Below are positions 862 to 32,848 of a DNA stretch of 46,200 nt, in pieces. The DNA lies in NCBI GenBank assembly GCA_002269645.1, contig NIVC01001885.1:1-46200 (forward strand), in the 5' to 3' direction. The DNA is from Macrostomum lignano. Taxonomy: Eukaryota. Position 1 is the stretch's first letter, and the number at the start of each line of letters is the position of its first letter. The position numbers were made by a program, and so were the translations under genes. The notes under the pieces are model-generated. The model saw nothing but the letters and a program-made list of their open reading frames with translations. It did not search any database and was not told the origin of the DNA.

Positions 862-2451
862 ATGAACTTCATCAAGGATTCGATCTTCGGCCGGCCGGAC
901 GAGCCGGAGAAGCTCAAGAAGAAGATCCCGGGCCCGGAGTGCCGATTCTGGCGACCTGCCGACCGCCACCAAGTGGACGCTGGCGAACCCGGGCAAGCTG
1001 CCGATGCACCGCACCCTGGAGCTGCACGGCCAGTTCGGCCCGGTCTACTCCTTCGGCGTCGGCTCGGCCACCTTCGTGATCGTCGGCGACCCGGCCATGT
1101 TCCGCCAGGTGCTCACTCACGAGGACTTTCAGGAGCACATCAACCTGCCATTCCTCAAGACCTTCGGCGCCCGCAAAGGAATCTTCATGGCCGACTACGA
1201 GCGCTGGAAGGTGCCGCCGGTTCAGCCATCGCATCCTGCGAGACCTGGGCTTCGGCAAGATCCAGATGCAGGTGAGAGACGCAGCTGATCATGGTTGAGT
1301 TCAGGTGCAGCCCATCCAATCATTCAGGCATTCCAAATCAAGCACTGTTACTCCCCTCTCCCCCCAATCAGGACAACATCCTCCGTGAGGCAACTCACCT
1401 GGTGGACGATCTCCGGTCGCGATGCTCGGAGCCGGTGGAGACGCGCGCCGCCATGTCCTGCGCAGTGTCCAACGTCATCAACCAGCTGGTGTTCGGCAAG
1501 CGGTTCGACTACAGCGAGCCGGAGTTCGCCAGGCAGCTGGACAGCGCCCGCATGGTCACCAACATCAGCCTGACTCTCGTGTTCTTCCCCATGATGTTCC
1601 CCTGGCTGGAGGGCCACCCGGACGTCATGAAGGCCCTGCCGGGCTCCGCCAGCTTCGCCGAGGGCTACGCCTTCATTAAGGCCTTCTGCAAGCGCGAGAT
1701 CGCCTGGCACAAGGAGAAGTTGGACTTCAACAATAACGAGGCCGACCAGCCCGAGGACTTCATTACCGCCTTCCTCCGCGAGCAGGTGCACCAGGACCCC
1801 GAATCGGAGCACTACTTCACTGACGACGATCTGTGCGACATTGTGGCCGATTTCTTCGTGGCCGGCACCGACACCACGGCCGTGGCGCTCACCTGGGCCG
1901 CCCTGCTGCTGGCCAAGCACCAGGACGTGCAGGACCAAGTCCGCGCTGAGCTCTTCTACCTCGGCGACACCATCCTGGAGAAGCAGGCCGGCCTGCACTA
2001 CACCCGCGCCTTCTGGGACGAGGTGCTGCGCTTCTGCATGCTGGTGCCCCTCAACATGCGCCACTCAGTCCGAGAGACCAGCGTCGGCGGCTACCGTATC
2101 CCGGCCGACACGGTGGTCGGCGCCAACGCCTACGCGGTGTCGCGCAACGCCGAGCTGTTCCCCGAGCCGGAGACGTTCCGGCCGGCGCGGTTCCTGGACG
2201 CCGAGGGCTGCTACTGCCGCAGCCCGGCCATGGACGGCCTCGTGTTCGGCGCCGGCAAGCGGGGCTGCATGGGCGAGAGCCTCGCCCGCATGGAGATGCT
2301 GGTCTTCCTGGCCAGCCTGGTGCAGAACTTCCAGCTGGAGCTGCCGGAGAAGGAGCGACCGAGGCTCAGCGAGATCTTCATCGGCGAGGACGGCGCCGTG
2401 CACCAGCCAAAGCAGCACCGGATTCTGTTCACCGAGCTGCACAGGGACTGA
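862..2451 (+). CDS. Cytochrome P450, CYP2-clan-like; exon 1 862-1271 (about 3 small frameshifts), intron 1272-1371, exon 2 1372-2451
   Basis: I-helix FVAGTDTT, K-helix EVLR, PETFRPARF (PERF-like) and heme motif FGAGKRGCMGE. KLKKKIPGP-GVPIL Pro-rich hinge and C-helix WKV.RRFSHRILRDLGFGK are recovered across frameshifts at ~935, ~950 and ~1213. The 100-bp GT..AG intron is phase 0. Confidence 0.92.
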
Positions 2452-4690: not shown

Positions 4691-7600
4691 ATGGCGTCGC
4701 GATCAGACGACCTGCCGCTGAACGACCCCGCAATGACGGAAGCTTGGCTACGAAGCTTCGCTGCTCTCAGCCGCAGCAAAAATCTCACGGACAGCGCAGA
4801 AAATCGGCAGGTCACTGACCTCTTCCTGGCGAAAGCCGGCGTGAATGCAGTGCGGATAGTCAGCGTCATGGCAAAGCCCAAGGAGCTGGAGGAGATGGAC
4901 TTCGCAGATATAAAAAATTGATAATCGAGAAGACTCTCCCGAAGAAGAAGCTTGTCATTGCTGAACGATCGATATTCATGTCGATGCGCCAGGAGCCAAT
5001 TGAGTCAGTGCAGGCCTTCGCACAGAGACTTCGGGATGCCGCCCGCTTCTGCGAATTCGACCAGTTGAATGCGGAGGACAGCCACCAGTCTGCCGAGGAC
5101 GAGCTCATGCAGACGATGCTCGTCAGCGGGCTGCACAATGCGCAGCACCGCAGCCGGATTCTGGAGCACATTCAGGGCTCATCGCAGCCGGTGGTTCTCG
5201 ACAGCAGCGTCGAGTTCATCCAGCAACTCGAGTTGATCCAGCAGTACGGCGGCGCGGACAGTCAGAAAACAGGGGAGACTGCAGCCCTAGCGCCTGCTTC
5301 CATCGCCAGCATCGACAAGAACAGGCGAGCTAGATGGACGAGCAACTTGCAGCTCTTGCGGAATGCAGCACCAACCCGGCCGTTGCCCAGCTCGAGGCAA
5401 GACCTGCAACAAGTGCAGCAAGCGCAACCATTTCGCGGCGGTGTGCAAGTCCGCCCCCAGATCAGCTCACGAAGTCGAGGCGGCCGAGGCAACGGAGGAT
5501 GGACCCATCTTCTCTGTCATTAGCACCCAGCAGCACAAGACCAGCAGCCTGAAGACCGTGCTGATTGACGGTCACGCTCTGGCGATGCAGCTGGACTCGG
5601 GATCGGACAGCAGCATCATCCCACAGAACTTCTGGAAGCAGCTCAGCGAGCCCCGGCTGCGGAAGTGCAGGCGCCAGCTTCGCCAGTTTGATGGCTCGAT
5701 CATCAAGACTCTCGGCAGCTTCACAGCGGCTGTCGAACTGGAGAACAAGATTGCGTGCGTGGAAGTCACGGTCGCGGCCTGCAGCAAGACCCTCCTGCAG
5801 TTCGATCTGGACGCTGTCTGTCTCAACCACGTGGGGCAGGCGCAGGAAACGCCTCTCGGGAAGCTGAATGCCTTCAAGGCGCGCATCCTGCTGAGGGACA
5901 ATGTCCGGCCGAGTTACTTCGAGGCGCAACCAGTGCCCATTCACCTGAAGCCGCTGGTCATCACGAAGCTCCGGAAGCTCATCGACAGCGGTGTTCTGGT
6001 GTCAGTCGCGCCAGGCGGCAGTCAGTGGGCGTCTCCGATCGTGGTCGTGAGGAAGCCCAACGGCGACATCAGGATCTGTGCCGACTACAAGATCGGGTGA
6101 ACCCCAAGATCTGTGCTGATTCCTATCCGCTGCCCAACATCGAGACGGCGTTCTGCGAGCTTGCGGGAATGTCTCACTTCGGCACCATCGCCTGGCGGAC
6201 TCGTACAATCAGCTCGAGCTGGACGAGGCTTCAAAGGAAATTCTCACCATCAACACCCCGATTGGACTGCTACGCTGGACAAGGATGCCCAACGGCGTGA
6301 AGACGCCAAGCGCACAGTTCCAGGCGGCCATGGAAGCAACGATCGGTGGTCTGGTGTCGAACCTAGTCATCTACCAGGACGATGTCTGTGTCGGAGCCAG
6401 GTCCGAGGCCGAGCTAGACGAGAAGGTCGAGAAACTGTTGCGCAGGCTCAAGGCGGCCGGAATGCAGATCAACGAGCGAAAGTGCGTCTTCAGAAGAACC
6501 GCGATCTCATTCCTCGGGTACAAGATCTCCGCTGATGGTGTTCGGCCCGACTCGAAGCTGGTGGGAAAAGTTCAGCAGACCCGTGCGCCGATGAACCGCA
6601 AGGAGCTCGAATCCTTTCTGGGGCTCACAAACTACTACGCGCGGTACGTCCAGGCCTACGCTGAGCGGGCCGAGCCACTCACGAAGCTGAGAAGTAAGCA
6701 GACACCATTCAAGTGGGGCCAGGACCAGCAGAAGGCATTCGACGACCTCAAGAAGGCTCTGGCAGTGTATCCAGTAGTGCGCAGTCTTTGATGCTTCGAA
6801 GCGCACGACACTGACAACAGACGCCAGTGACAAAGCGATCTCGGCCATCCTGACTCAAGACGAGCACCCGGTGATCTACCTGTCTCGACGGCTCACAGCG
6901 GCAGAGCAGAACTACTCCAAAATCGAGCGAGAGGCCCTCGCCATCGTGTGGGCGACTCAGCGAGCACGACACTTTCTGCTGGGCGCCAATTTCACCTTGA
7001 ACTGCGACCATCAGCCGCTGGAGCCAAGGAGATCCCGAAAGTCACGTCTGCGAGAATCACGCGGTGGACGATCCAACTGGCTGCTTTCGACTACGATATC
7101 GCGTACGTCCGCGGAAGAAGCATCCCACATGTCGACGCGATTTCGAGACTCGAGTTCGAGGAGAAGTTCGAGCAACCGGAGGTGGTCGAGAGTGTTATCC
7201 ACTGGACAGAGACGGACGTGCTAAAACTCGAGGACGTTCAGCAGTCAACGGCGACCGACTCAGTGCTGCTGGGCATCAAACGCCGGATCCGCGACAACGT
7301 CTGGAGCAACTGCTCTGCGGCCGAGCGTCCCTTCAAGAGCGTGCGCCAGCAGCTGTCCGTCGAGGACGGCGTCATCTGCATGGGTGACCTGGTGGTGCCG
7401 CCAGCCGCGCTGCGACCTCAGCTGCTGCAAGCGGCACACGGCGACACCCACTGCGGAGCGCTGGCGACGCGCAACCGGCTGAAGCGAGAGGCCTGGTGGC
7501 CAGGCCACTGCGATGACGTCGAGCAATACGTCAAGCAGTGTGTGAAGTGCGCGGAGATCCGCACACCACCAGCCCGCACGACGCACACCTGGCCAGCGGA

Positions 7601-8333
7601 GACCACGGCGTGGCAGCGGGTGCACATCGACCACGCGCACGTGCAAGGAGCCGGCTCCCTCCTCATCGTGGTGGACGCCTTCTCTGGTTGGCCGGAGGCG
7701 GTTCTGGTGCCCGACAGGACGGCCAGAACGACGCTGCAGGTTCTGCGGGCGATCTTCTCGAGGCTAGGCGTGCCCCGGACCTTGGTATCTGACAACGCGC
7801 CAGGCGGCATGGTCCAGACGGTGAAGCACGGGCTCCGGGCATTTGCAGCGCACCGCGGCTCCTTCGAAGCGTACCTGGCCAAGCTGCTGCTCAATTACCG
7901 TTCGACGGCGAGGAGCGACGGCCGGGGCAGCCCGTCGGCGCTGATGGGCCGACAGCTGAGGAGTCCGCTGACAATGACCTTCGAGATCGACGCACCAGTT
8001 GTCTACCAGCCAAGCTCCAGTGCAACGGCCGAGCCCGCTCGCTTTGTGGTCCAAGCAGGCAGCAACACGGCGGTGATCATCCGCGACAACAACCGGCCGG
8101 CCCTTGCCCATCGGGACCAAATTCGGCCGCTGCCGTTCGACTTGACGGTCACGCCAGGGCAGGAGCAAGCGACCGGGCGCGGACAAGAGACAGCGGCTGA
8201 GGAGACTCCGGTCGAGCCCGAGACTCCGATGTCGGGCAGCCCCAACACCGAAATCGAGGTGCCGGCGGCGCCGAGGCGTAGCGAACGCGGAAACAAAGGA
8301 GTTCCCCCCGAGCGGCTCACTCCTCCGTGGTGA
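4691..8333 (+). pseudogene. gag-pol polyprotein, multiple frameshifts and deletions
   Basis: Two Zn knuckles (CSSCGMQHQPGRC, CNKCSKRNHFAAVC), protease LDSGS, RT motifs WASPIVVVRKPNGDIRICADY, YPLP and YQDD, RNase H TDASD...YSKIEREALAIVWA...DHQPL, integrase H-H-C-C (HCG..CVKC) and WQRVHIDHA/VDAFSGW/SDN. Roughly 35 codons appear deleted after SDNAP, removing the usual NG.AE segment. Confidence 0.9.
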
Positions 8334-8498
8334 GGCGTCGCTTGGCGGGGCTCATCAACTATCTCTGACTCGCCTTGCGTATCTGCGTACTTAATATCTA
8401 GTGTACTCATTACCAATGTACTTAGTGTGCACGCGCGGAACGTTGCATCTTTCTATCTATATGCTAAAGCTTAAAGTTTGATCGCGCTGTACTCGTAA

Positions 8499-8637
8499 TG
8501 TAGGCGGCATGTTGCCGTCGGTCGTTTTCAAGTTAATATAAAGACCGGTTTGGCTATCAGTTGCAGTCTCGTATTCTATGCTCAGCTAAGAGCTCTCTTA
8601 AATAGAAAAGAGTCCATCTTATTGCTACGACACGACA
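8499..8637 (+). repeat. Putative 3' LTR (TG...CA)
   Basis: The last 29 bp match 4662-4690 with one mismatch. The start at TGTAGG is inferred and the rest does not align with the 5' LTR. Confidence 0.5.
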
Positions 8638-8892
8638 AAAACATCCCAAAGTAAGGATGTTTGCTCGTTGAGGCTCCTTGACACTTGTCATAGTAGAAGC
8701 TGGCTGGTTGACAGACCATGAGTATTGGCAGCTCCAGATGCAGCCGCAGGGGCTCAGTAGTAACAATGCAGCTAGGTGTTAATAGGAACAAAACCAAAGG
8801 CGGATTTCCAAATCTTCAGCTGGATTCAGAGATTTAAATGCTTCAGAATGCTTCTTGTTCCATTGAGCTAGAAAACGATAAGAATGCAAGAC

Positions 8893-8957
8893 ATCCCGGG
8901 ATTTCGATTGGGCCTAAATCCCGGGATTGACCATCGGGATCCCGATCCCGGTTTGCA
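8893..8957. repeat. ATCCCGGGAT-motif cluster, probable DNA-transposon/MITE subterminal remnant
   Basis: Several ATCCCG/CGGGAT motifs ending in TTGCAAT. The same motifs cluster at 10632-10718. Confidence 0.45.
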
Positions 8958-9099
8958 ATAATTCAATCATTCATTCTCGAGTAGTAGTATCTGCAGCTGA
9001 GCAATTTGTCAGGTGAAAATCATCACCCATTTGTCTTGCTTTGATTTATTAATCTTTTAAGCATGCAGGCTAGTGAGACGGCTAGGACTTCAGGGATAC

Positions 9100-9868
9100 A
9101 ATATAGAATTTTGCAGCCCATTTGGGCTTACGCGCATTTAATTTAATCCAAGATACGTTTGCCAATGTAACAGAGCTTTTGTCTATGGTAGCAAGGCTGG
9201 CGCAGCGGCATTTAATTTGGTCCAAAATTGACCAACAAGCATCCATTTGGTCCAAACACTCGTGAGCCATTGGACAAACTCTTGCCTTCTCTCAACCGTC
9301 TGCAGGTTGTTGCGCACCGCTGGAATGTCAGCGTCTCTACCAAAAGTTTTCAGTTGCTTTTCCAGAGCTCTGCTGATAGTCGAAATCTGATAACCAACTG
9401 GAGCTGTTCCCTCCCCTCAACTTCTGCTGCATTTCTGCAACGTCAACAAAGGGTTCGTCTCCACTGCATCGAGTAGCAGTTGGACCTGAGGCTCTCGAGC
9501 AACTTTCCTTGGCGATTGCCACCCTTTCGCAGGCAATCTCTGCCGGCAGAGTTTCAACGCGCTGCTGGATGCTGTAAACCACCTTTTCTTTTACATTCAG
9601 CAACCTTGCAATGTCCTTTGGGTGTTCACCTCCGTCGAGTGCTTCGATCACAAGCCAATGACATTCGTTCAATAGCCTAGCATATGGTCCACAATTCTGG
9701 GACTGAGCTGAAAATGAACTAAATGGACCAAATTGATGCTTGTTGGACTAAATTAAATGCCGCTGTGCCAGCCTTTCTACCATAGACAAAAGCTCTGTTA
9801 CATTTACAAACGTATCTTGGATTAAATTCAATGCGCGTAAGCCCAAATGGGCTGCAAAAAGCTATATT
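9100..9868 (-). mobile_element. Non-autonomous Tc1/IS630-like DNA transposon with ~150-bp TIRs and a truncated transposase N-terminus
   Basis: 9100-9254 is the reverse complement of 9724-9868. Across frameshifts the interior reads LVIEALDGGEHPKDIARLLNVKEKVVYSIQQRVE..GGNRQGKL..PQVQLLLDAVETNPLLTL..STISRALEKQLKTF..IPAVRNNLQTVERRQEFVQW (HTH region). No DDE domain is present. Confidence 0.75.
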
Positions 9869-10631
9869 GAAGCTATTGGCAGATCGTAAAGGAGATTTTA
9901 GGTGTAACAATGTACGTGCAGCTGTATGTATTTGTTACTCGCAGACTAATGTAATTATTAATCAAAAACCTGTAAGCAGAGCCTAAAGCAATAGAAGCCA
10001 ATTCTCATTGTTTCCTATCACAGCGCTATAGCTTGCCAGACGGGAGTCAAATCATTGTTCATTTGAACTCTCCCTCTATCTCAAACCCAGCTAAAGTCGG
10101 GGGGTCTCGAGTCTCGACCTTGCGCAGATCAGAAGCCTCCTATGCGAAAGACCTCATTCTCAGCACTGTCAGGACACCCTTTAGATGCCCAAATAGGGTT
10201 GGTGGCAGAACTTCTTTAAGCAGTCCCCTACCTTCAAAACTTCTTGGCCGTAGATGGGATTAGAACAGTGGGAGTCCGGACCTTGCTATCGCACCACAAC
10301 CCAAGCTATCTATGGCGGGTGCCCCTGGGAGGGTGAGGTCTGATCCCCTTCTAACCTGGTATCAGTACCTCGCGCCATAGCTCTGTAAGCTATCGTTCCC
10401 CAGGTTACATCACAATCAAGTGTGATTCTCCTGAGCTGATACCGAAATGCAAAAAAGCATGTCTAATACGCCAGCCCGTACATCCCACTCCAATTCAGAG
10501 CTCACTGTCAGTTTCTTGTTTGCAAAAATCTTTTATTCTGTTGTAATTTTATCATTGAAAGCCTTTTAAAATCATATTAGATAGCTTCGTAAAGCAAAAT
10601 TGCACCAACAAAAATTAGAAACCTTTTCAAT

Positions 10632-10718
10632 TCCGGGATCTCGGGATCTCGGCCCAATTCGTCGGGATCCCGGGATTGGCAAAGTCCGGGATATCCCGAT
10701 CCCGAGAATCCCGGGATC
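10632..10718. repeat. ATCCCGGGAT-motif cluster (MITE-like subterminal remnant)
   Basis: About eight CGGGAT/ATCCCG motifs in 90 bp. Confidence 0.45.
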
Positions 10719-12557
10719 AGATTGAGTTTCATGAAATGAGAATTGAAAATTGAGTTCAGTAGTTGATTTTTGCGCTGTTGCGAGTTGCAAAATTTTTACA
10801 TTAGCTTTTATGGCCACATAAGTGGTTAATGAGTGGCCCATCTTGTGTATATATGACCTTTGATCTATACCTGTTACTGACTGTGCTTTAGACACGTACA
10901 CAGCGTGGAAATGGGCATGGAATTAAAAAAGATTGCAATTATCGTGTGTAACGAAATTGCAATTTTTTTTACAATTTTCTTGCTATATATCGCATTTTAG
11001 CACAATCCACTTATCTGGTGAATACTGGGCGCATATACAACCGAAACGGCGTTTCGTGTCGACTGCTTGTTGACCAACAAACGCCGTCCTCGTTGGTGCG
11101 CCGCGTCGACCTGCTGTTCAATTGAGCCTGTCAACGTCCTGATATCGGAGTTTTAAATTTTGGTCCAGTTTGCAATCACGTTTTTGAAGTTTTTTCATCG
11201 AAAAGTACTAATATTTGGTGGTGTTTAAGGAGAATTTAAGCATAGTATCGGATGAAGCATTTAAAAAATTCTGTCCCAAAAGCAGAATGAATGAAATATG
11301 AATATTTAGCCAGTCTCAACTGTCAGAAAGTTGGGCTGCTTGTGACGAGACATTGACAGCTACTCGGGTGGCTGCTGAGAGTTGCGCATGCACACATTTT
11401 TATCCTGTGCTTTGTAAAAATTTGATTGTCAAATTTCAAACAACCCATCTGAATTTTTTGCCCAACATGCGCTTCAAACAGAATCCTTTGCCAACGAGTA
11501 TGAATGCATTGAGCACGGTGGAATCTTTCATGGCCTGCCTTGTGCAGCGCACTTTGATGCGTTTCTTTGAATTCTCGATTGTCCAGACTACTTCAATGTC
11601 ATTCCAATTTCTATATGAATTAAGTGAGCGCATGTGCACCAAAGTTTTAACTCATCACGCTCTCTGGGTGTTGGAAATTACTGAAACTTGCGTAAAAAGT
11701 CAATAGTTTGAGCATCAGAGTATAGGGCTTACTGACGCTAAAACTCTAATCGATAAGCCGTGTAAATAAAGTTAGCATCACGGACTCCGGAAGCATTTTT
11801 AACAAAGTTATAGTGAGATTTCAATTGTTCCTGTCTCTTTTGTGTATTTTTTCGACTGATTCCTAGATTATAATTACCTAGATATAATTACCTAGATTTA
11901 ACACTCCAGCATTCGCTAATGTATGTAGCGGCCATCTCCCAAGACCCGATAACCCCGCGGTTAGGGCCATAGACACTGGCCGCTGCTAATGCTTGAGAGC
12001 AGCAGAAGCTACAGTCTATGGTCTTAACCCCGGGGTTTTTGCGCTGTGGCTAGGCGGCTGGATTATAGAATCTTTGACCGAAGTCTGTCTACACTAAATA
12101 AGGTTTCACCATAGACAAAGTCGGTCGAAAGCATACTGAATGCACTAGCGATACGACTTAGGAGAATGGTCATTTCTAGGAAAATAGAGTGTATAGGCGT
12201 CCTTCTACTTTTAGTTGCAGATGTGCCGCTCTGCAATGTAACGATATATGAAGATTTTTTCGGCAGCAATTGCTGCCGTGAAAGAATCTGTCTATGTCGT
12301 TATTGTACCCTTTTGCCATGGATGAAGGACGTACCCTTTTGCCCTTCATCCATGCCTTTTGCATGAAATTTGTTTTTGCCGGATTTCTAGTCAATTCTGC
12401 TGTCTATGGCACTTTGAAAGAGCAGTAAAGCTAATAGTCAGTCGTCTATGGTAGTTGGAAAGGACAGTGACGACGACTCGACTATCTGTCATAAATAATT
12501 CCCTAGTGGATTTTTCAGCTTTCAATTAAATTACCAATAGAAAAAGGAGCTACATGT

Positions 12558-13060
12558 ATGTTCGTTTCGCTACAAAAACCCTGGCGGAGGAAATGTGGAC
12601 TCTCCACGGACGAGTTGGCTTTGTCAACCGAGAGTCGAGCAGTCGCTTTTCTGGAGATTAACAATTTTGATGCGTCGTTTAGTACCGAAGTGCTGCCTGA
12701 GCTGACTAGCGAAGATCTACAAATGCTGCACCGGATTAAGAATGAATCTGCGCCGAAATCGACCGAGACTCAATGAAAACTTTGCGTGGCAAGGTTCCGT
12801 CAGTTCCTCAACGAGAAGAGGAGTTTAAAGCGCTTGCCGGGTCGATTCCTGAACGATAATCTGAGGCTTTTCTATTCGTCTCTTCGAAAGCAGGATGGAG
12901 CACACTACGCGCTGAAGTCTTTTATCTGTTTTCGTGCGGCAATTCAACGGCACCTGCACTGGAACCCGTCCGTCAATCGCCAGGTGAACATCATTACCGG
13001 AGAATCATTCAAGTGTTAAAACGGAGTTCTTGTCGAACTTATATGTGACAGAAAAATAAT
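12558..13060 (+). pseudogene. Crypton/DUF3504-type tyrosine-recombinase N-terminal remnant
   Basis: Reading through in-frame stops gives ...KNESAPKSTETQ*KLCVARFRQFL...LNDNLRLFYSSLRKQDGAHYALKSFICFRAAIQRHL...QVNIITGESFKC*NGVL. This resembles the RKxDGxxYxxxS...RAAIQRHL...NII...F segment of Crypton/KCTD1/ZMYM-related proteins. The catalytic C-terminus was not seen. Confidence 0.7.
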
Positions 13061-13303
13061 ACTACTCCTTTTGTTGTGTTTGTTGTTGTGCGTCACTGTT
13101 AGATTTCGATTCTTTTCTAGAGCCAAATGCATCTGTTAATTTTCCGGCAGCAATATAAAACAGCCGGCAAACAATTGAATTGTCGCCAAGAGGATCACTG
13201 CCGAAACCAAAGACAAAAGAGTACAATAAAAATTTTATAAAGCTTTTATTCTCTGCAAACTTATCGAGCACACCTCGAACGGAACACATAAGCTGCCTTG
13301 ATT

Positions 13304-13962
13304 AACATAGCTTTTTGCAGCCCATTTGGGCTTTCGCGCATTGAATTTAATCCAAGATACGTTTGCCAATGCAATGGAGCTTTTGTCTATGGTAGCAAGG
13401 CTGGCGCAGCGGCATTTAATTTGGTCCAACAAGCATCAATTTGGTCAAACCATTGGACAAACTCTTGCCTTCTCACAACCGTCTGCAGGTTGTTGCGCAC
13501 CGCTGGAATGCCAGAGTCTCTACTAACAATTTTCAGTTGCTTTTCCAGAGCTCTGCTGATAGTTGAAATCTGATAACCAACTGTTCTTTTAACTTCTGCT
13601 GCATTTCGGCAACGTCAACAAAGGGTTCGTCTCAACTGCATCGAGTAGCAGTTAGACCTGAGGCTCTCGAGCAACTTGCCTTGGCAGAGTTTCAACGCGC
13701 TGCTGGATGCTGTAAACCATATTTTCGTTTACATTCAGCAACCTTGCAATGTCCTTTGGGTGTTCACCTCTGTCGAGTGCTTCGACCACAAGCCAATGGC
13801 ATTCGTTCAACAGCCTAGCATGGTCCACAATTGTGGGGCTGAGCTGCAAATGAACCAAATGACGGAAGGACAAGCAAACAAAGACGGACAAACGAGGCGC
13901 GCTTCTTCTTGCCAAGGCGGACAAATGAAGCGCGCTTGCCCAAGCGTACTAAATGCTATATT
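13304..13962 (-). mobile_element. Second copy of the Tc1/IS630-like element, right TIR replaced by a neuropeptide-gene fragment
   Basis: 13304-13860 is a direct, diverged copy of 9100-9724. 13881-13949 matches the ASFVRLG repeat region at 14489-14590. GCTATATT at 13955-13962 equals the terminal 8 bp of copy 1. Confidence 0.75.
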
Positions 13963-14275
13963 CATTTTAATTTTGTCTGCTTAGTTCAGACTTATTCTTA
14001 TAGACAATAGAGCTAGCATGCAGCGAAATTGAAGAAGCCGAAAAGCAAAAAAGTTTCTGTTGGCTCAGAATAAAGCCAACTTTATTATAGATAGAGCTCC
14101 AGTTGCTTTGTACGCTCGTATATTTTTTCTGTTATTCAATTTCAGATCGTCTGCAATCAGACTTGGGCAGAAGATGACGCTGGTTTGGGGGCGGCGGGGG
14201 TTAACATTGTTCCTATTAATTCATTATCCAGTCTTTGAAACTGGGGGCGACTTGAAATAATAGCAGCTCAAGCCC

Positions 14276-14755
14276 TCAGCCCAGTCGGACAAAGCTCGCC
14301 CTCTTCTTGGCGTCGTTCAGCTGCTCATCGTCCAGGTAGCTCTCGTCCTCCGGCTCGTAGCTTGGCCGCTTGCCAAGACGGACGAACGAGGCGCGCTTAC
14401 CTAGGCGGACAAATGAGGCGCGCTTCTTCTTGCCGAGGCGGACAAACGAGGCGCGCTTGCCAAGACGGACAAACGAGGCGCGCTTTCCAAGACGGACAAA
14501 CGAGGCGCGCTTCTTCTTGCCGAGGCGGACAAACGAGGCGCGCTTCTTCTTGCCAAGGCGGACAAATGAAGCGCGCTTGCCCAAGCGTACAAACGAGGCG
14601 CGCTTGTCGTTGGCTAGGCCGGCCTCCTCGCCGAGCTCCGCGCAGTAGGACAGACAGTCATCGTCCACCTCGTCCGAGAGGCAGTCGGCTGGCGCGCAGG
14701 CGAAGGCGGCGCTGACCGCCAGCAGCAGGCAGAGTCCAATAAGTTCGGCTCGCAT
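14276..14755 (-). CDS. npp-1: Neuropeptide precursor encoding 9 copies of ASFVRLamide (FVRL/FVRIamide family)
   Basis: Signal peptide MRAELIGLCLLLAVSAAFA. Nine ASFVRLG units are flanked by KR/KKKR cleavage sites with a Gly amide donor, and the last ends G-stop. Synonymous codon variation exists between units. The ATG at 14755 is preferred over the ORF-track start at 14824. The symbol is by recalled similarity to flatworm npp-1. Confidence 0.92.
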   Translation of the reverse strand: MRAELIGLCLLLAVSAAFACAPADCLSDEVDDDCLSYCAELGEEAGLANDKRASFVRLGKRASFVRLGKKKRASFVRLGKKKRASFVRLGKRASFVRLGKRASFVRLGKKKRASFVRLGKRASFVRLGKRPSYEPEDESYLDDEQLNDAKKRASFVRLG

Positions 14756-16727
14756 TCTGCGGTTTAAGGGGTTTTGGAATGATAACAGATGTACAGGATG
14801 AGGCCTTTTCAAGTCTATGGACATAAAAAGGTTGAAATGATATGCTTATAAATTAACGGTTGAGATTGTCTGTGGGGAAAAGTATGGTGGACGAAGGGAG
14901 ACGGCTAACTGAAAAGTAGCGAGGCTGAATTGCAAAACAGAAAGTACAAATATTTGCAGGATTGAAATCCGACAATAGTCTATTTGGCCCGGCCAAGGTT
15001 TGACAGTTGTTAGAAGTAGTTATGCAGCTTCAGTCAATTGTAAATGAAGCTATCAATAATTCTAAAACGCTTGCTTGATGGATGGGAATTTTTTTGGAGA
15101 AAAAAATCTAGGAGTCAGTTTCATCTCAAAGCGAAATTCGAAGTCTAAAGCTCCCGATCTCATGTTATTTACTCAGACAAGAGAGGGCTCGACACTGAGA
15201 TCAATCTTGCCCCATTTTCTAGTCTCTGAATATTTGCTTTCCGGTATTGTTTCGATTAAAGAAACTTTGACTTCCTTTTTGACTGAAGAGTTCGGATAAT
15301 TGGATTTTGAGAAATTTGATAACGCACCGCGGTTGCTGGCCAAGCTATACCCGACTTTCCGACTTTCTCCCCGAGAGACTTTGGCAGAAGTTCTCTGCTA
15401 GATGCGCGCTTTGAACGGAATCAGTTCGGCTCAAAAGTGTCAAACCGAATGCTTGCACCCCAGTCTCACTGAATTCTCGTCACTTCAAAGCCCCAAGGCC
15501 TTTTCTTTACTTTGATGGCGATAATTTCGTTAGTTGCTAAGCCACATTCTTCCAGTTTGCGACACCCACACAAAGCATTTGCATTCAGCTGCTGCGTTAG
15601 CGCCAACAAGAGAGAGAGTTTGCAGACTTGCCAACAAGTATCTGCCAATGGAGATCAGTGCAAACACCTGCTAACTGCTTGCCGGAAAGTGTTTACCACT
15701 GTCAGCAATGCCTGCAATTGTTTAAATTCAAACATGCAATAAATGAAGAGGCCTAAGTACTGAGTTGTTAGCTGGCTCCACTCTAGACAGCAGCAATTGT
15801 CTCACGACAAATACTACGGCTTGTATCTTCGGGTGTTCGTCAAAAATTGCTGCAATGGAATTGCCGAATTTAAACAACTTGCCAACTGCAGCACGCCCAG
15901 CTACTCCAGCCAAGCACTCGGGTTTATCGCTAGTCAAAGGATTTGCCAATATCAGCTCTCGGTCCTCGAGTCTGCAGGACTTCGCAGCGCTCTTGAGTTC
16001 TGATGATGGCGACAGGCTGAAAGTCTCAGCAGCCTCCATCTGCGCCTCTCCTATTCCCGTCCGCTTTCTTGGGAAAGGGCGCTTTAGGAAGTGGAGAGTA
16101 GGATAATGTTTCATGCAAAGCAGGGGGCATGGGAGGGGGGGGGTCAGCGGCGCCCGACTTCGAACCTTTGACTCTCTGCAGCCGCTTTGCCAATAAGCAG
16201 CAAGGCTCCGAGCCGTTCGAGCGTTGACAGTAGGAAAATATCAATTCCTTCTGTTCCGGACAGGCCCATAAAGTCTCCGGCTGGCTGAACTCAATAACAT
16301 TTTTTCTGTGCGCCGCCTTGGACTCGTTCGCGCACACGCGAAAAGATTTATAAGGCTCCTCTCACAGAGCGCCATATGGTTTCAGCTGGCTTTTGCTCCG
16401 AGCTGCCCCCGACTGGTTAATAGCCGCGAAATTGAGACCTACGATATCAATAAACGAAACTTCGCAACGCCAAAAGTGGTTTCGGTGTTCTCCGGCTGTC
16501 GAGCTGGCTGTCGAACTGGCTGAGAAGCCAGTTCCCCTAGCAACTGTTATTTGTGGGGCGTCACAAATTATGGCCGGTTCACAGCATCGATTTCTAGTTG
16601 CAGCCCCAGTTCCTCTTATTAAATCGATTTTGATATGCGGCGTAGCAGCTCGACTCAATATTAATAAATTATTAGGCACAAAAGTTGTGTTTTTTTCATA
16701 GCGGGAAAATTCTACTACAGGAGGAAG

Positions 16728-16728
<1 letters not shown>

Positions 16729-16769
<41 letters not shown>
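16729..16769. repeat. (CT)n microsatellite
   Basis: Direct reading of the sequence. Confidence 0.95.
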
Positions 16770-16770
<1 letters not shown>

Positions 16771-17918
16771 GCATCGCAAAACAGACTTCTGAGCAAACTG
16801 CTGGGCACTGTTTGTACAGGGCTTGGAGATTTTTCTTGTTCTAAAAAATCTACAATCTACAAGTCGGAATAGCGATTGTAAACACTTGAAGTCTTTTTAA
16901 GCGATCTCGTACTCTGCCTCGTCCCGATTCTGCAGTTCCTTAGCCTCCTTCCTGGATGAGAGCATTAAAATTTGCACAGAGCAAGCACTTTATTTGCTTT
17001 ATTGCATAGTTACATGTAGACCTAGCCTTGATGCTCACCCAGCCTCTTTAACGGCTGGATCTGCGAGACAATGCGCCGACAGGGGAGTGGCATGGGTAGC
17101 CCCTCAAGAGTCGCTAGTTAGTCAAGTCGACCAGCCCACCGACTTACATTGAGCTTCATCAATATTGCATCCGTTTGCATTGCTAGAAAGAAAGAAATAG
17201 AAAAATCAAGGCGGGGAACCGGGGGGGGGGGTAGGACCGGAGAATAGGGGATATCGGGGATAAAAAATAACGCCACAATGCTAGAGAACCTTTTGCCGGC
17301 AAATTGTCCTTCAAAATACTTATCTAACCCCATTTGAATGTAATAAAGCCGTTTACAAAAAATTTTATCTAGAAGCAATTTTTTTAAAAGCAAAAAAACT
17401 GCAATACATTAAAACAATTCTGTGACATCAAGTTCAAATTGACTTACCTGTAGTGCTTTCTCTGCCTTTGCGTTAGAAATAAGAGGAATTTCAAAAGCAA
17501 CTTTGGTCTGTTGATTGAAGTCCTATACAAAGCCGAGATTTTTTGGGAGCGGCACCCCTCCGGGCCCCGCGGGTCAGCCGCTTTTATCGGCTCTGGATCG
17601 GCGTCCCAACCCCCCCCCCGCCGTCGCTGCACTCGCCCGGCTCTTGCCAGTTGAAGTCACTCAGTCAGCTATTGGCTGGCTTGAAAGGGAGATTCAACTC
17701 TCCATGGCCCAGGAGGTGCAGCTGCTGTCTCTTAGAGCCAGCTATGGACGAGCAAATCAATCATTGCCGCTCTCAGGGTTAATCCGAGTGCTGAAAATTT
17801 TTTAACTTGCTATTAAAGAAATTTTTAAAGATAAACTTTCTAGATTCAGGGAAACTTGATGGACCAGTCCGTTTGTACTTTTATGGCGAAATTCTCCGTA
17901 TTCTGTACCTAGACTATG

Positions 17919-19066
17919 TATGAGAATGGGTATGAGGATGGGTATAAGAATGGGGATGGGGATGGGTATGAAAATGGGGATGGGTATGAAAATGGGGATG
18001 AGAATGAGCTTGAGAACAGATGAGAATGGAGATAAGAATAGAGATGAGAATGAAAATGAGAATGGGGATGAGAATGAGCTTGAGAACAGATGAGAATGGA
18101 GATAAGAATAGGGATGAGAATGAGGATGAGAATGGGGATGAGAATAGCGATGAAAATGGGCTTGAGAACAGATGAGAATGGAGATAAGAATAGGGATGAG
18201 AATGAAAATGAGAATGGGGATGAGAATGGGGGATGAGAATGAGGGATGAGAATGGGGGATGAGAATGGGGGATGAGAATGGGGGATGAGAATGGGGATGA
18301 GAATGGGGGATGAGAATGGGGGATGAGAATGGGGGATGAGAATGGGGGATGAGAATGGGGGATGAGAATGGGGGATGAGAATGGGGGATGAGAATGGGGG
18401 ATGAGAATGGGGATGAGAATGGGCTTGAGAACAGATGAGAATGGAGATAAGAATAGGGATGAGAATGGGGATGAGAATGGGGATGAGAATGGGGATGAGA
18501 ATGAGCTTGAAAACAGATGAGAATGGATATAAGAATAGGGATGAGAATGAAAATGAGAATGGGGATGAGAATGGGGGATGAGAATGAGGGATGAGAATGG
18601 GGCATGAGAATGGGGGATGAGAATGAGGGATGAGAATGGGGGATGAGAATGGGGATGAGAATGGGGGATGAGAATGGGCATGAGAATGGGGGATGAGAAT
18701 GGGGGATGAGAATGGGGGATGAGAATGGGGGATGAGAATGGGGATGAGAATGGGCTTGAGAACAGATGAGAATGGAGATAAGAATAGGGATGAGAATGGA
18801 GATAAGAATAGGGATGAGAATGGGGATGAGAATGGGGATGAGAATGGGGGATGAGAATGAGGGATGAGAATGGGGGATGAGAATGGGGATGAGAATGGGG
18901 GATGAGAATGGGGATGAGAATGGGGGATGAGAATGGGGGATGAGAATGGGGGATGAGAATGGGGGATGAGAATGGGGATGAGAATGGGGGATGAGAATGG
19001 GGGATGAGAATGGGGGATGAGAATGGGGGATGAGAATGGGGATGAGAATGGGCATGAGAATGGGAT
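17919..19066. repeat. 12-13-bp GATGAGAATGGG(G) satellite with an interspersed longer subunit
   Basis: Tandem units plus about six copies of GCTTGAGAACAGATGAGAATGGAGATAAGAATAG. The ORFs here are repeat artefacts. Confidence 0.95.
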
Positions 19067-19611
19067 AAAGACGAGTATCAAGTGGAGACGGTAGTTGAGA
19101 GTAGCAGTAGATGCATTACACCATCTCTCGCAGCTTTACTAAACTCTTGAGCCTATTTTTGTGCTGAAGGAAATTATTGAGCATCAAATTCTGTTGCTAG
19201 GGGATATTTCTTTCCAATAAAATATGCGCAGATTCGGTGCCCGGTAGGCCTGATTAGAATTGAGCATCTCTCTGTCTGCCAGTGAATGGCGCCAGTCCGT
19301 CTTAGGCAATCTGCCGGTCTTGAGTGATATTCCATGTAGGCACAGCTCCACTCTCCCCCCTCAAGTCTCCGGGCTTCGTCAACCAAGCCAACCAGTCAGT
19401 GCACAAAAAATACTCGTATTTGCCAGCAGAACAGGAGAATCTAATTTTCACTCTAACTCTTTCTATCTGGGGTCTGGAGTGGCTTTGGATGAAACATTGA
19501 TATGGCAACCATGGCAACCATCGGAGGTTTGTTGAGGTGAATTGCTGATCGGTTTTATTTGAGCCTGGATCTGATAGACTTAGTTCAGGTGCCAACCAAT
19601 TCTGTTTTTCT

Positions 19612-21070
19612 GACTCGATTGCAGATTCATGACTGACTCGATTGCACACTCATGTCTGACTCGATTGCAGATTCATGACTGACTCGATGGCACACTCATG
19701 TCTGACTCGATTGCAGATTCATAACTGACTCGATGGCACACTCATGTCTGACTCGATTGCACACACTCATGTCTGACTCGATTGCACACTCATGCCTGAC
19801 TCGATTGCACACTCATGCCTGACTCGATTGCAGACTCATGCCTGACTCGATTGCACACTCATGTCTGACTCGATGGCACACTCATGTCTGACTCGATTGC
19901 ACACTCATGCCTGACTCGATGGCACACTCATGCCTGACTCGATTGCAGATTCATGCCTGACTCGATTGCACACTCATGCCTGACTCGATTGCAGACTCAT
20001 GCCTGACTCGATTGCACACTCATGTCTGACTCGATGGCACACTCATGTCTGACTCGATTGCACACTCATGCCTGACTCGATTGCAGATTCATGACTGACT
20101 CGATTGCAGATTCATGCCTGACTCGATTGCAGATTCATGCCTGACTCGATTGCAGATTCATGCCTGACTCGATTGCAGATTCATGACTGACTCGATTGCA
20201 GATTCATGCCTGACTCGATTGCAGATTCATGACTGACTCGATTGCAGATTCATGACTGACTCGATTGCAGATTCATGCCTGACTCGATTGCAGATTCATG
20301 CCTGACTCGAATGCAGATTCATGTCTGACTCGATTGCACACTCATGCCTGACTCGATTGCAGATTCATGCCTGACTCGATTGCACACTCATGCCTGACTC
20401 GATTGCAGATTCATGCCTGACTCGATTGCACACTCATGCCTGACTCGATTGCAGATTCATGCCTGACTCGAATGCAGGTTCATGCCTGACTCGATTGCAG
20501 ATTCATGCCTGACTCGATTGCAGATTCATGCCTGACTCGAATGCAGATTCATGTCTGACTCGATTGCACACTCATGCCTGACTCGATTGCAGATTCATGC
20601 CTGACTCGATTGCACACTCATGCCTGACTCGATTGCAGATTCATGCCTGACTCGATTGCACACTCATGCCTGACTCGATTGCACACTCATGTCTGACTCG
20701 ATTGCACACTCATGCCTGACTCGATTGCACACTCATGTCTGACTCGATTGCACACTCATGCCTGACTCGATTGCACACTCATGTCTGACTCGATGGCACA
20801 CTCATGTCTGACTCGATTGCACACTCATGCCTGACTCGATTGCAGATTCATGCCTGACTCGATTGCACACTCATGCCTGACTCGATTGCAGATTCATGCC
20901 TGACTCGATTGCAGGTTCATGCCTGACTCGATTGCAGATTCATGCCTGACTCGATTGCAGATTCATGACTGACTCGAATGCAGATTCATGCCTGACTCGA
21001 TTGCAGGTTCATGCCTGACTCGATTGCAGATTCATGCCTGACTCGATGGCGGATTCATAACCGACTCGAT
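19612..21070. repeat. 23-bp satellite CATGCCTGACTCGATTGCA(GATT/CACT)
   Basis: About 63 tandem copies with two interleaved variants. Confidence 0.95.
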
Positions 21071-21984
21071 TGCGCCAATTATTTATGACGTGCGTCAGTT
21101 TTTCGTCTTGACTGCAAAACCATAAGACATGTTTTCTTGTGTCTATCTTTAGATGCGAAGTTTCCATATAGGCAAGGTTTGACGTAAAACGATTAACATA
21201 TCTATTATTATTCATAAACTTCGATGAGTTGCTTATATGGCATTTCAAACATTTCGCTGATCAATTTCTGCAGCAAGGTTTGGCGACATAAGGCGATTGA
21301 CTCGTGACTAAACATCCCCGTGAGCTTAAATTGCGGGAAGAAATTTCTCAATTGAGTTGCTAACAGCTCTGCTAACAGCTAGCAAACAGATTACATTGAT
21401 AGATACTAGCAATCTGCGCTCCCATTGGGGAAAGCAACAAAGAGAAGAACCATTTTTCAATAACCAATACGTGTGGCTTCTGACGCTGCACAGTCACTAT
21501 TGCTGGTTTCTTAAGGAAAATAATGTGTAGATCTAAAAAGCAGCAGCCCTAAGCTATCATCTATCTAGGCAACCCCCTCCCCATGAGCCACAGCATTTTA
21601 GCGATTCCACCATGAGCCTTGGCATCTCAGCAACTCTCAGCAAAATGATTTAAGATACCGCTAGACTTTATTAGAGGCAGGGGGGTTGTGTGTACCCTGG
21701 CGCACTTTAAGCGACATTGTCACACAAACCGGCGAGAGGCATTACTGTCCATTCCGCTGACTCCCCTGAGCAGGCATACAAACGCGCGGATACGTACCGC
21801 AGTCATACGCACAGGCACACACTCACACAGTAGTGTACAGCGGCCCTACCAGGTAACTTTATTTATGGCTTGACATGTACACTTCACTGTGCCTTGGGGG
21901 TTGGCCCTCAAGGGCGTTAATTGCACGAGCAGAGTCAAGCTGAGATTCCAATTTAGCCCCAAATTAATGTGACTGCACTTGGAA

Positions 21985-22031: not shown

Positions 22032-22211
22032 ATACCTCTAGACAGATAAGATACCTCTAGACAGATAAGATACCTCTAGACAGATAAGATACCTCTAGAC
22101 AGATAAGAAACCTCTATACAAATAAGATACCTCTAGACAGATAAGATACCTCTAGACAAATAAGATACCTCTAGACAGATAAGATACCTCTAGACAGATA
22201 AGATACCTCTA
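22032..22211 (-). repeat. 19-bp satellite, inverted short array (~9 copies)
   Basis: ATACCTCTAGACAGATAAG is the reverse complement of the 23051-25187 unit. Confidence 0.93.
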
Positions 22212-23050
22212 CTGATAGACAGATAAGCAACCTCAAAACAGTTTGCCAATAAAAAAGCGTCGTATTTATAAACAAGCCTACAAAAGCATTTAAAACAGTT
22301 TGTTTCCCTATTAAATTACCAAATATTTGCTGCATAACACGAGACTATCCTCAGTGAAATGATCTCGTCGTATTCACAGAGTCAAAAAGTTATTTCTATT
22401 GCGAATTTCGAAGTGTACAGCTATCTTCCTAATAGAGTGAATTTGCAGTAAAACAAATGAATTCTGTTTGAATTGTTTCACCTGTGTGCCATTGCTCTGC
22501 TTGTTTTGCAAATTGTATTCAGCCATTCCGTTTGAATTGAAAAATACGACCGGCTTAGGGGGATCAATAGCTGATAGAGACTGTTCCCAAGCTGATAGCA
22601 AATCCCTATTTAGCGATATTTTCCCAACTAAATTCTTCTAATTGCTAGGCGATTTCCACCCGGAAGAGTGGCAGACTGGAGCAGATGTTCGAGTGGGCCC
22701 CCCTTTCTCTCGGAACCCCCATGCAAAGCATGCCAGGCGCGTGACTTGGCCTTCAATTTTTGCGGCATTTCTTCCCGCCGCATCCCAAACTGGCAGCCAT
22801 CCGCGAACACCTGGCCCGCGATTATATCCGTTCGTGCAGCGGTAATCAGCCACTTTTCTCCTTCTGACAAGCAATTGTTTGCGAGACAAGACAGAGAGGC
22901 ACTTGTGCCGCGAGCCCGTATCGCATTATCGGTTTACAATTGGATCCCTCTCGCTACCTGTACACCGCTGTTAAATTTCTTGGAAATACTGGGTGGTGGC
23001 AATATCACGGAGAGACTTTCTAAGAGAGCGTCTGTGGGTGTCTGTCTATA

Positions 23051-25187
23051 GGTATCTTATCTGTCTAGAGGTATCTTATCTGTCTAGAGGTATCTTATCT
23101 GTCTAGACGTATCTTATCTGTCAAGAGGTATCTTATCTGTCTAGATGTATCTTATCTGTCAAGAGGTATCTTATCTGTCTAGAGGTATCCTATCTGTCTA
23201 GAAGTATCTTATCTGTCTAGAGGTATCTTATCTGTCTAGAGGTATCTTATCTGTCAAGAGGTATCTTATCTGTCAAGAGGTATCTTATCTGTCTAGAGGT
23301 ATCTTATCTGTCAAGAGGTATCATCTTATCTGTCTAGATGTATCTTATCTGTCTAGAGGTATCTTATCTGTCTAGAGGTATCTTATCTGTCTAGAGGTAT
23401 CTTATCTGTCAAGAGGTATCTTATCTGTCTAGATGTATCTTATCTGTCTAGAGGTATCTTATCTGTCTAGAGGTATCTTATCTGTCTAGATGTATCTTAT
23501 CTGTCTAGAGGTATATTATCTATCTAGAGGTATCTTATCTGTCTAGAGGTATCTTATCTGTCTAGAGGTATCTTATCTGTCTAGAGGTATCTTATCTGTC
23601 TAGACGTATCTTATCTGTCTAGACGTATCTTATCTGTCAAGAGGTATCTTATCTGTCTAGAGGTATCTTATCTGTCTAGAGGTATCTTATCTGTCTAGAG
23701 GTATCTTATCTGTCTAGAGGTATCTTATCTGTCAAGAGGTATCTTATCTGTCAAGAGGTATCTTATCTGTCTAGAGGTATCTTATCTGTCAAGAGGTATC
23801 ATCTTATCTGTCAAGAGGTATCATCTTATCTGTCTAGAGGTATCTTATCTGTCTAGAGGTATCTTATCTGTCTAGAGGTATCTTATCTGTCTAGAGGTAT
23901 CTTATCTGTCAAGAGGTATCTTATCTGTCTAGAGGTATCTTATCTGTCTAGAGGTATCTTATCTGTCTAGAGGTATCTTATCTGTCTAGAGGTATCTTAT
24001 CTGTCTAGAGGTATCTTATCTGTCAAGAGGTATCTTATCTGTCAAGAGGTATCTTATCTGTCTAGAGGTATCTTATCTGTCTAGACGTATCTTATCTGTC
24101 TAGACGTATCTTATCTGTCAAGAGGTATCTTATCTGTCTAGAGGTATCTTATCTGTCTAGAGGTATCTTATCTGTCTAGAGGTATCTTATCTGTCTAGAG
24201 GTATCTTATCTGTCTAGAGGTATCTTATCTGTCTAGAGGTATCTTATCTGTCTAGAGGTATCTTATCTGTCTAGAGGTATCTTATCTGTCAAGAGGTATC
24301 TTATCTGTCTAGAGGTATCTTATCTGTCTAGATGTATCTTATCTGTCAAGAGGTATCTTATCTGTCTAGAGGTATCTTATCTGTCTAGAGGTATCTTATC
24401 TGTCTAGAGGTATCTTATCTGTCAAGAGGTATCTTATCTGTCAAGAGGTATCTTATCTGTCTAGAGGTATCTTATCTGTCAAGAGGTATCATCTTATCTG
24501 TCTAGAGGTATCTTATCTGTCTAGAGGTATCTTATCTGTCTAGAGGTATCTTATCTGTCTAGAGGTATCTTATCTGTCAAGAGGTATCTTATCTGTCTAG
24601 ATGTATCTTATCTGTCTAGAGGTATCTTATCTGTCTAGAGGTATCTTATCTGTCTAGATGTATCTTATCTGTCTAGAGGTATATTATCTATCTAGAGGTA
24701 TCTTATCTGTCTAGAGGTATCTTATCTGTCTAGAGGTATCTTATCTGTCTAGACGTATCTTATCTGTCTAGACGTATCTTATCTGTCAAGAGGTATCTTA
24801 TCTGTCTAGAGGTATCTTATCTGTCTAGAGGTATCTTATCTGTCTAGAGGTATCTTATCTGTCTAGAGGTATCTTATCTGTCTAGAGGTATCTTATCTGT
24901 CTAGACGTATCTTATCTGTCTAGAGGTATCTTATCTGTCTAGAGGTATCTTATCTGTCTAGAGGTATCTTATCTGTCTAGAGGTATCTTATCTGTCTAGA
25001 GGTATCTTATCTGTCTAGAGGTATCTTATCTGTCTAGAGGTATCTTATCTGTCTAGAGGTATCTTATCTGTCTAGAGGTATCTTATCTGTCTAGAGGTAT
25101 CTTATCTGTCTAGAGGTATCTTATCTGTCTAGAGGTATCTTATCCTGTATAGAGGTATCTTATCTGTCTAGAGATATCTTATATGTC
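23051..25187 (+). repeat. 19-bp satellite GAGGTATCTTATCTGTCTA (~110 copies)
   Basis: Direct reading of the sequence. Confidence 0.96.
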
Positions 25188-25833
25188 TCATTATTCGATA
25201 TTTCGTCTGCGTTAAATAAATTCATTTCTCTAGCGTGTCAGCTACTGACAGTAGTCTCTGTTAGAGAAATTTTCATGCGTATAATTGATGACGCAAAAGT
25301 CGGGAAAACACAACCAGATTGGGGAAGGTAAAATAGATAAGCGCACCTGATCGCGAATGTCTTATCCCTTAAAAGACTGAACGTTTTTTACTTGCAGGAA
25401 CGAAGCCAATTATAGAAGACTGAGCTGTGGCTTTGCATAAGTAGGTTTAACTCTATGCTTTCAATGCCAGTTGCTACTTGCTGGCAATTTTTTTCGCTAT
25501 CGACTCCCTTATGCACCAGGCTCTGTCTATCATCCAACAGCTCTTTGGATAATTAATCTAATCATTTGATAAAAAACTACATTTCCCTAATCTGCCTTTT
25601 TCATCTATCTTACAATTCCTTAATCTCATTTGGTCTCAACTCCCACATTTGCTCTTTGCATCTTTCTTGATCTGTACCTGACAGTATGATCTATCGGTCC
25701 CTATCTCTTGTATCCCTCGGCTTCTTAAACTGAGGAAGCTGCACGGCTATTCGCCCCCCCTCCCCTCAGCCAGTCTCTGAATCCCGATTGTTGGGGAGTC
25801 GATTAGCTCTGCCGCTCTGCCGGGTGAGAGCGG

Positions 25834-32768: not shown

Positions 32769-32848
32769 CATAGTGATGAGCAATCGGTAAGACCTCAATT
32801 TTATAAACTGTCACCGCGCACAAACGTGAATTCAATCCTACTAAATTT

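Follow-up and report, generated by a model that had tools for sequence, protein, structure and literature searches.

At one locus of the flatworm Macrostomum lignano, a copy of a DNA transposon carries a short piece of the adjacent neuropeptide gene where its right terminal inverted repeat (TIR) is expected. How did the piece come to be there, and is the resulting chimera a gene-capturing transposon or a repair scar? A first-pass annotation of the sequence had proposed templated gap repair or template switching from the adjacent gene and had described the outcome as Pack-type capture. We analyzed the whole stretch of DNA (the window), which is a complete 46,200-bp contig of M. lignano assembly GCA_002269645.1, together with related M. 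lignano loci. The window holds an intact copy of the element (copy 1) and the chimeric copy (copy 2). The right end of copy 2 is, with good probability, the scar of one inaccurate repair in which a gap was filled by template switching to the adjacent gene.

Other sequences were recognised along the contig. An uninterrupted 386-aa ORF at 1291-2451 (+) matched the cytochrome P450 profile over positions 116-459 (E 7.5e-72), the N-terminal part being absent from the ORF. Degenerate LTR-retrotransposon pol sequence, with gag-asp protease, RVT_1, Integrase_H2C2 and rve distributed over several frames, occupied 4918-8333 (+). A 77-aa ORF at 12786-13019 (+), close to copy 2 on its upstream side, showed a weak QRICH1-domain match (E 3.5e-4, below threshold) and may be a remnant of Crypton-derived or QRICH1/ZMYM-like sequence. 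Two ORFs, 25917-26522 and 30420-31181 (+), matched a rhodopsin-family GPCR (7tm_1), one its first part and the other its last. The ~4 kb between them consisted mostly of a 46-bp satellite (26457-27155), which begins within the first GPCR ORF, and a 12-bp satellite (27494-30058, 214 copies). Satellite arrays were also seen in 17920-21073 (12/26-bp units at 17920-19064, 23-bp units at 19610-21073), in 22032-25188, where a 19-bp unit at 22032-22211 runs in the opposite orientation to the 112-copy array at 23041-25188, and in 31730-41679. Arrays further along had 20-, 36-, 14-, 23- and 39/80-bp units, and tandem repeats made up more than a quarter of the contig.

To the right of copy 2 lies the gene from which the inserted piece derives (Table 1). 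Its ORF encodes a 159-aa product from MRAELIG, with a hydrophobic N-terminus (signal peptide assessed by eye only) and ASFVRLG units bounded by KR or KKKR sites. Matches in a homology search included Schmidtea mediterranea 'Neuropeptide-1' (UniRef E3CTL1, E 1e-6), and the label npp-1 that the gene had been given earlier is therefore reasonable. The Schmidtea precursor likewise has tandem ASFVRLG units between dibasic sites. The M. lignano gene encodes nine such units, and M. lignano differs further in having paralogues with PSFVRLG and ASF/YVRMG units. An exact look-up of the 159-aa precursor gave no match; the gene is annotated as a partial protein of greater length, which was reached by homology search. 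The further npp-1-like genes were located on other contigs (L001, L002, L004-L006). Mlig018704 and Mlig031594 encode PSFVRLG units; Mlig007455 (g1, g3) encodes ASF/YVRMG units and, at three paralogous loci, has an LRR/EGF/laminin-G gene and a thioredoxin-like gene as neighbours.

Table 1. Coordinates of the features of the two element copies and of the donor gene in the window
Feature	Position	Strand	Remarks
Left TA duplication of copy 1	9102-9103		
Copy 1	9104..9864	-	both ends intact; orthologous copy in contig L003 98% identical
TIR-L of copy 1	9104-9254		
Internal ORF of copy 1, HTH remnant	9337-9672	-	
TIR-R of copy 1	9724-9864		
Right TA duplication of copy 1	9865-9866		
Copy 2	13308-13958		
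Left target-site duplication of copy 2	13306..13307		CA in window, TA in L003
Left TIR of copy 2	13308..13446	+	BLAST to copy 1 right TIR
Internal part of copy 2, HTH remnant	13447..13861	-	ends at GAACCAAATG (13852-13861)
Filler	13862..13880		ACGGAAGGACAAGCAAACA
69-bp npp-1 piece	13881..13949	-	U4, U2 and first 12 nt of U1; gene's own orientation
ACTAAATG	13948..13955	+	second copy of the 8 nt preceding the right TIR in intact copies
Last 4 bases of element, GCTA (13955-13958), and right TA duplication (13959-13960)	13955..13960	+	alignment with copy 3
npp-1-like neuropeptide precursor gene BOX15_Mlig028341g1	14276..14755	-	ORF and homology search
Donor stretch in npp-1	14489..14590	-	14489-14521 (U4) and 14555-14590 (U2 and start of U1)

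Three independent copies of the element with differing flanks were found, two in the window and an intact copy 3 on contig NIVC01001942.1 (L007). Copies 1 and 3 diverged by 4.7%, and copy 2 differed from either by 7-10%. Copy 3 sits in unrelated flanks (...ATACTA/TAGCATTTTGCAGCCC ... GGGCTGCAAAAAGCTA/TATTATTC, with slashes marking the boundaries). TIRs in the family are 141-151 bp long and contain internal direct repeats. The inverted-repeat arms of copy 1 matched at 94% (9099-9225 with 9743-9869) and 96% (9232-9254 with 9724-9746), and those of copy 3 at 88% over 147 nt. An alignment of the three copies and a comparison of their six termini showed that the element spans TAG...CTA with TA on each side. 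The arrangement TA/TAG...CTA/TA was seen at all six termini, the left end of copy 2 in the window excepted. The base at -3 differed among the termini (A, A, T, A, C, A) and therefore belongs to the flank and not to the element. Alternative ends (8-bp hAT-like, TTAA, TWA, or a start at CAATATAG) were ruled out, copy 3 showing that the bases outside the TA vary.

The TIRs, TA duplications and dispersed copies support a DNA transposon, as the first-pass annotation had called it, and the features taken together point to a non-autonomous Tc1/mariner-like family of ~760 bp. Within the TIR, GCATTTAATTT[AA/GG]TCCAA occurs at 9134 (9134-9154) and 9208 (9208-9228), and a second direct repeat, ATTTGGTCCAAA, at 9215 (9215-9226) and 9245 (9245-9256). 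Lying at outer and inner positions, these repeats may be transposase binding sites of the IR-DR type; we take their layout to resemble the IR-DR of some Tc1-like elements. Sleeping Beauty, Tc3 and Minos form a group of Tc1/mariner elements with long inverted repeats of this type. The M. lignano element shares with them the TA duplication, the long TIRs and a putative HTH-like N-terminal remnant, the last seen as weak matches to HTH_29, HTH_23 and HTH_28 in the internal ORF of both window copies (E 2e-4 to 6e-3, below Pfam thresholds). It differs from Tc1/mariner elements in its ends, TAG...CTA against the common CAGT, and in its ORF, in which no catalytic DDE/D domain was found.

A word-indexed protein search with the 111-aa ORF of the element gave no match, and a full HMMER scan returned two proteins. 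One of these, BOX15_Mlig015650g2 (P0017), is a 203-aa 'hypothetical protein' whose ORF runs from TIR to TIR through copy 3 (L007:2951-3691). Its place in the gene set is an artefact of the transposon, and it is not a host gene. The other, P0018, is a 798-aa PDZ-domain gene model in which a diverged fourth copy is embedded (residues ~270-400), with 59% aa identity to the HTH ORF and TIR-derived residues upstream. Exonisation could account for the embedded copy, as could an intron that was mis-predicted. P0017, used as a query, retrieved only itself, and no autonomous partner was found in the protein searches.

Copy 2 departs from this family structure at its right end. BLAST of 13200-14050 against the window matched 13304-13861 to 9100-9725 (83% with gaps) and 13882-13952 to 14523-14593 (97%). 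The left TIR of copy 2 matched the right TIR of copy 1 in reverse (13304-13446 against 9868-9726, 93%). The pattern therefore indicates long TIRs in copy 1 and the absence of the right TIR from copy 2. Homology between the copies, which the first-pass annotation had correctly seen to break off here, stops at G13861 rather than at 13860, 1-2 nt inside the inner edge of the expected right TIR. The deletion extends from there to 3-4 nt before the outer end and removes almost exactly one arm: 136 of ~141 nt (copy 1 equivalents 9726-9861) are missing, and ACTAAATG is joined to CTA. The internal part of copy 2 also carries lineage-specific deletions relative to copy 1 and to the paralogous contig L003, described below.

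Between the end of homology and the gene-derived piece lies filler, as reported earlier, although the reported 20 bp is 19 nt unless G13861 is counted. No template for it was found in the window beyond chance-level 9-11-mers, and a greedy decomposition into gene and element pieces performed no better than shuffles. The reverse complement of the gene-derived piece encodes VRLGKRASFVRLGKKKRASFVRL. By script, the piece matched the donor stretch at 69 of 69 positions after removal of one 33-bp unit, and it included the U2- and U1-specific variants. This agrees with the earlier report of a match with diagnostic variants, in which the skipped unit had been given as 30 bp. The unit missing from the copy is U3 (14522-14554, or any register inside a 23-nt identical window). 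Read contiguously against 14522-14590, the piece matched at 67 of 69 positions, with two G-to-A differences. Its donor is 0.54-0.64 kb distant on the same strand. None of the other npp paralogue loci (L001, L002, L004-L006) matched the 69-bp piece, and these loci contained neither the element nor a stray peptide-coding fragment nearby.

Beyond the gene-derived piece, element sequence resumes. The sequence ACTAAATG is also present in copy 1 (9718-9725) and in copy 3, in the context GAACTAAATG/GACC; in the window the count of this 8-mer is 2+1. An insert of ~86 bp is enclosed by this sequence and 13852-13861, which together make up an imperfect 8/10 duplication. Then follows GCTATATT (13955-13962), identical to 9861-9868 and found at just these two sites in the 46.2-kb window on both strands, which bears out the earlier observation that copy 2 ends in the last 8 bp of copy 1. 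The element remnant proper at this end is 4 bases, or ~8 with one mismatch (AAATGCTA against AAAAGCTA), plus the TA. GCTA and TA come after the piece, which places it, as first read, within the element boundaries in the position of the right TIR. The only microhomologies visible on the right side were the AC of ACTAAATG, overlapping the gene-derived GTAC, and a G overlapping GCTA. The left junction, which the filler obscures, has GAC in common at an offset of 1 nt.

A second locus was found through the gene's own protein. The second NCBI member of its 90% cluster, BOX15_Mlig028341g2, is on a 497-kb contig, NIVC01000984.1 (L003), which is collinear with window positions 8000-20000 and carries both element copies. 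The junction reads base for base as in the window, with no difference in the 69 bp or in the ACTAAATGCTATATT tail and 2 differing positions of 20 in the filler. Substitution divergence between the two contigs was 0.4% over 8000-9098, 1.2% in copy 1, 2.9% between the copies, 5.5% in the left part of copy 2, 3.6% upstream of the gene and 0.2% in the npp-1 coding sequence, with no difference in the gene-derived piece (0/69). Within copy 2 each contig has its own deletions, complementary to those of the other, and 211 bp are inserted in L003 at the point corresponding to window position 13100. The patchiness of the divergence over 8000-16000 may reflect conversion between subgenome copies. A divergence of ~2% in SNPs has been reported among the three paralogous subgenomes of Mlig_3_7 (PMC10733133), and the divergence of the flanks (0.4-3.6%) is consistent with that figure.

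The presence of the same junction in two diverged paralogous contigs, both from one assembly and one inbred line, argues that it is not a local misassembly and that it predates their split. To judge from the two sequences compared, the junction is older than the separation of the window and L003 paralogous blocks. No differences separate the 69 bp from the gene, where about one would be expected at the level of paralogue divergence; their absence is unsurprising and is no reason on its own to invoke gene conversion. A search for the junction elsewhere recovered it in the window and in L003, with shared flanks, and nowhere in ~130 kb of other M. lignano loci.

The form of the junction suggests how it arose. 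The insert coincides with the deletion, the TIR-R sequence being gone exactly at the insert site, and a nearby template accounts for the whole gene-derived piece with one repeat-unit slip. The templated gap repair or template switching proposed earlier fits this structure best, with a donor in cis, a coupled deletion and a retained terminus. We infer a single event of synthesis-dependent repair. Copy 2 would be an old insertion in whose right TIR a break or gap opened before the two M. lignano loci diverged. The TIR would have lost its 136 nt, leaving GCTA beside the TA duplication, and the gap would have been bridged by DNA synthesis with a template switch. In the course of this, 69 nt would have been copied from the npp-1 repeat array, with slippage past one 33-bp unit, and ~19 nt of unassignable filler added. 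The element would then have been rejoined a few bases from the point of departure, leaving the imperfect 8-10-nt duplication (GAACCAAATG ... GTACTAAATG).

Such a repair could have taken the form of synthesis-dependent strand annealing (SDSA) or of abortive gap repair following excision; a polymerase-theta-type templated insertion or replicative template switch after some other break is a further candidate. Transposase excision is the leading candidate for the trigger because the length of the right-end remnant roughly corresponds to that of a Tc1/mariner excision footprint, as we take it to be. The fit to footprint size and the fit of the deletion to one arm were both recognised post hoc and are suggestive. 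Several points weaken this reading: the junction microhomologies (AC, G and the offset GAC) are short and imperfect, at 1-3 nt; the 19-nt filler matches no template; no autonomous partner came to light that could have supplied a transposase; and plain abortive gap repair would not lead one to expect the near-exact loss of one inverted-repeat arm. A two-step history, with a deletion and a later, separate insertion, is possible.

Comparable filler DNA is known from other transposons. At excision sites of rice DNA transposons, fillers of 1-123 bp have been credited to SDSA (PMC4423477), and maize Ds-like elements contain filler DNA that is occasionally gene-derived (PMC3260210). Classical cases for the P element, MuDR and Ac are among those cited in PMC6379663. 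Like these systems, copy 2 combines a deletion with a short foreign insert within the 1-123 bp range, keeps its extreme terminus, has short imperfect junctions and drew on a gene as donor. It differs in its flatworm host and Tc1/mariner-like element, in the unambiguous cis donor 0.6 kb away, in the 33-bp tandem unit that was skipped, and in the deletion of almost exactly one TIR. The right end of copy 2 is a known kind of event in a new host.

Other origins can be weighed against the same features. That the deletion comprises almost exactly one arm of an inverted repeat could mean that the long, spaced repeat folded back in the course of replication or resection, that one arm was cut at single-strand/double-strand junctions, and that the gap was filled by fork stalling and template switching (FoSTeS), microhomology-mediated break-induced replication (MMBIR) or polymerase-theta synthesis from the nearby gene; an insert templated in cis and in direct orientation, with a short flanking duplication, would suit this sequence of events. 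The coincidence with the arm was noticed post hoc, however, and folding of the isolated TIR is ordinary (z = 0.8); a self-hairpin of the right TIR was ruled out on that folding energy as the cause of the precise loss. This possibility, which we regard as rather unlikely, differs from the repair described above in its trigger alone and has all the demonstrated steps in common with it. A relic of a partial tandem npp-1 duplicate, alongside which the transposon inserted, would explain a fragment in gene orientation 330 bp past the stop codon. Gene homology, though, ends abruptly at both edges of the 69 bp, and ACTAAATG and GCTA/TA, which are element sequence and target duplication, come after the fragment; moreover, the fragment matches the gene at 69/69 against the 7-10% divergence of copy 2 from the other copies. 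Such a relic is very unlikely. There is even less to be said for a retrocopy of a piece of npp-1 mRNA made by LINE machinery, in which the 8-10-nt duplication would be the target-site duplication: the fragment is exonic and the imperfect 8/10 duplication does surround an insert of ~86 bp, but the sense-strand 3' end has T/G-rich filler and no poly(A), the fragment comes from within the coding region and misses one 33-bp unit, and the duplication is partly due to overlap with the GTAC of the gene. An assembly artefact in Mlig_3_7, through a chimeric read or mis-polishing, must be considered for a contig that is short (46.2 kb) and satellite-rich, in an assembly reported to have 36% of its length in scaffolds that are chimeras of subgenomes (PMC10733133). 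Misassembly had been named from the outset as the way in which the structure could be spurious. It is very unlikely indeed, since NIVC01000984.1 has the identical junction and differs from the window at many nearby positions and indels; the two contigs were therefore built from different reads.

The description of copy 2 as Pack-type capture of a neuropeptide cassette did not hold. In Pack-TYPE elements, host fragments are enclosed by two functional TIRs and become transduplicated (PMC8903248). Copy 2 resembles the Pack-MULE and Pack-CACTA elements of plants (PMC8903248, PMC6379663) in being a non-autonomous class II element with a fragment of a host coding gene inside. The fragment lies between the left TIR and the last bases of the element, with TA on both sides, and in L003 it is in frame with the internal ORF, as would be expected of a chimera that is or was a mobilisable transposon able to transduplicate the cassette. 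Against this, the right-side transposase binding sites went with the TIR, which is reduced to 4 bp, and the chimera is therefore not mobilisable. Both instances share flanks over kilobases, as paralogues do. A search of ~130 kb from other M. lignano loci, a weak test, gave no chimeric copy, nor did proteins similar to npp-1 include one, and no ATG stands ahead of the fragment. Pack-TYPE elements have two TIRs and form families; copy 2 has one TIR, a single locus with two paralogues and a 69-bp cargo. True Pack-type capture is accordingly very improbable. In the favoured route of Pack capture, the Catoni model, two neighbouring insertions are co-mobilised after loss of the inner TIRs (PMC8903248). 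This model does not fit the locus, since copy 2, seen from copy 1, has lost its outer TIR.

The position of the gene-derived piece bears on whether it is used. It lies in sense orientation ~330 bp past the npp-1 stop codon and ~130 bp past the first minus-strand AATAAA (14087-14082), and it is probably outside the mature npp-1 mRNA. In L003, an 83-aa ORF at 13800-14051 (+) that runs from TTG (MGKRASFVRLGKKKRASFVRLFLLVRPSFGSFAAQPHNCGPYARLLNECHWLV...) joins the npp-1 piece in frame to the HTH ORF; stops precede it, with no ATG. In the window, at 13815-13943 (-), a 2-nt deletion ends the L003-type frame early. Neither a start codon nor a signal peptide was found for the 69-bp piece, and no sign of function for the chimera is evident. 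There is only a slight chance that the chimera is used, in small-RNA regulation of npp-1, or once was in translation with the HTH ORF, for which the L003 version retains the frame, or has been mobilised elsewhere. Use would proceed by read-through npp-1 transcripts or by element transcripts carrying a second sense copy of the repeat; mobilisation elsewhere would make it the first animal Tc1/mariner 'Pack' element with a neuropeptide cassette.

Copy 2 is an immobile fossil with an ordinary DNA-repair scar, and it leaves the view of transposon gene capture unchanged. As an example of repair, it is one in which donor, unit slip, kept terminus and minimum age are all legible from the sequence. For annotation of the M. 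lignano genome, it cautions that ASFVRL-coding matches outside the gene do not signify extra neuropeptide genes. It also brings to light a previously undescribed TA-flanked family, one copy of which is now labelled a hypothetical protein. The junction itself serves as a marker common to the paralogous subgenome blocks.
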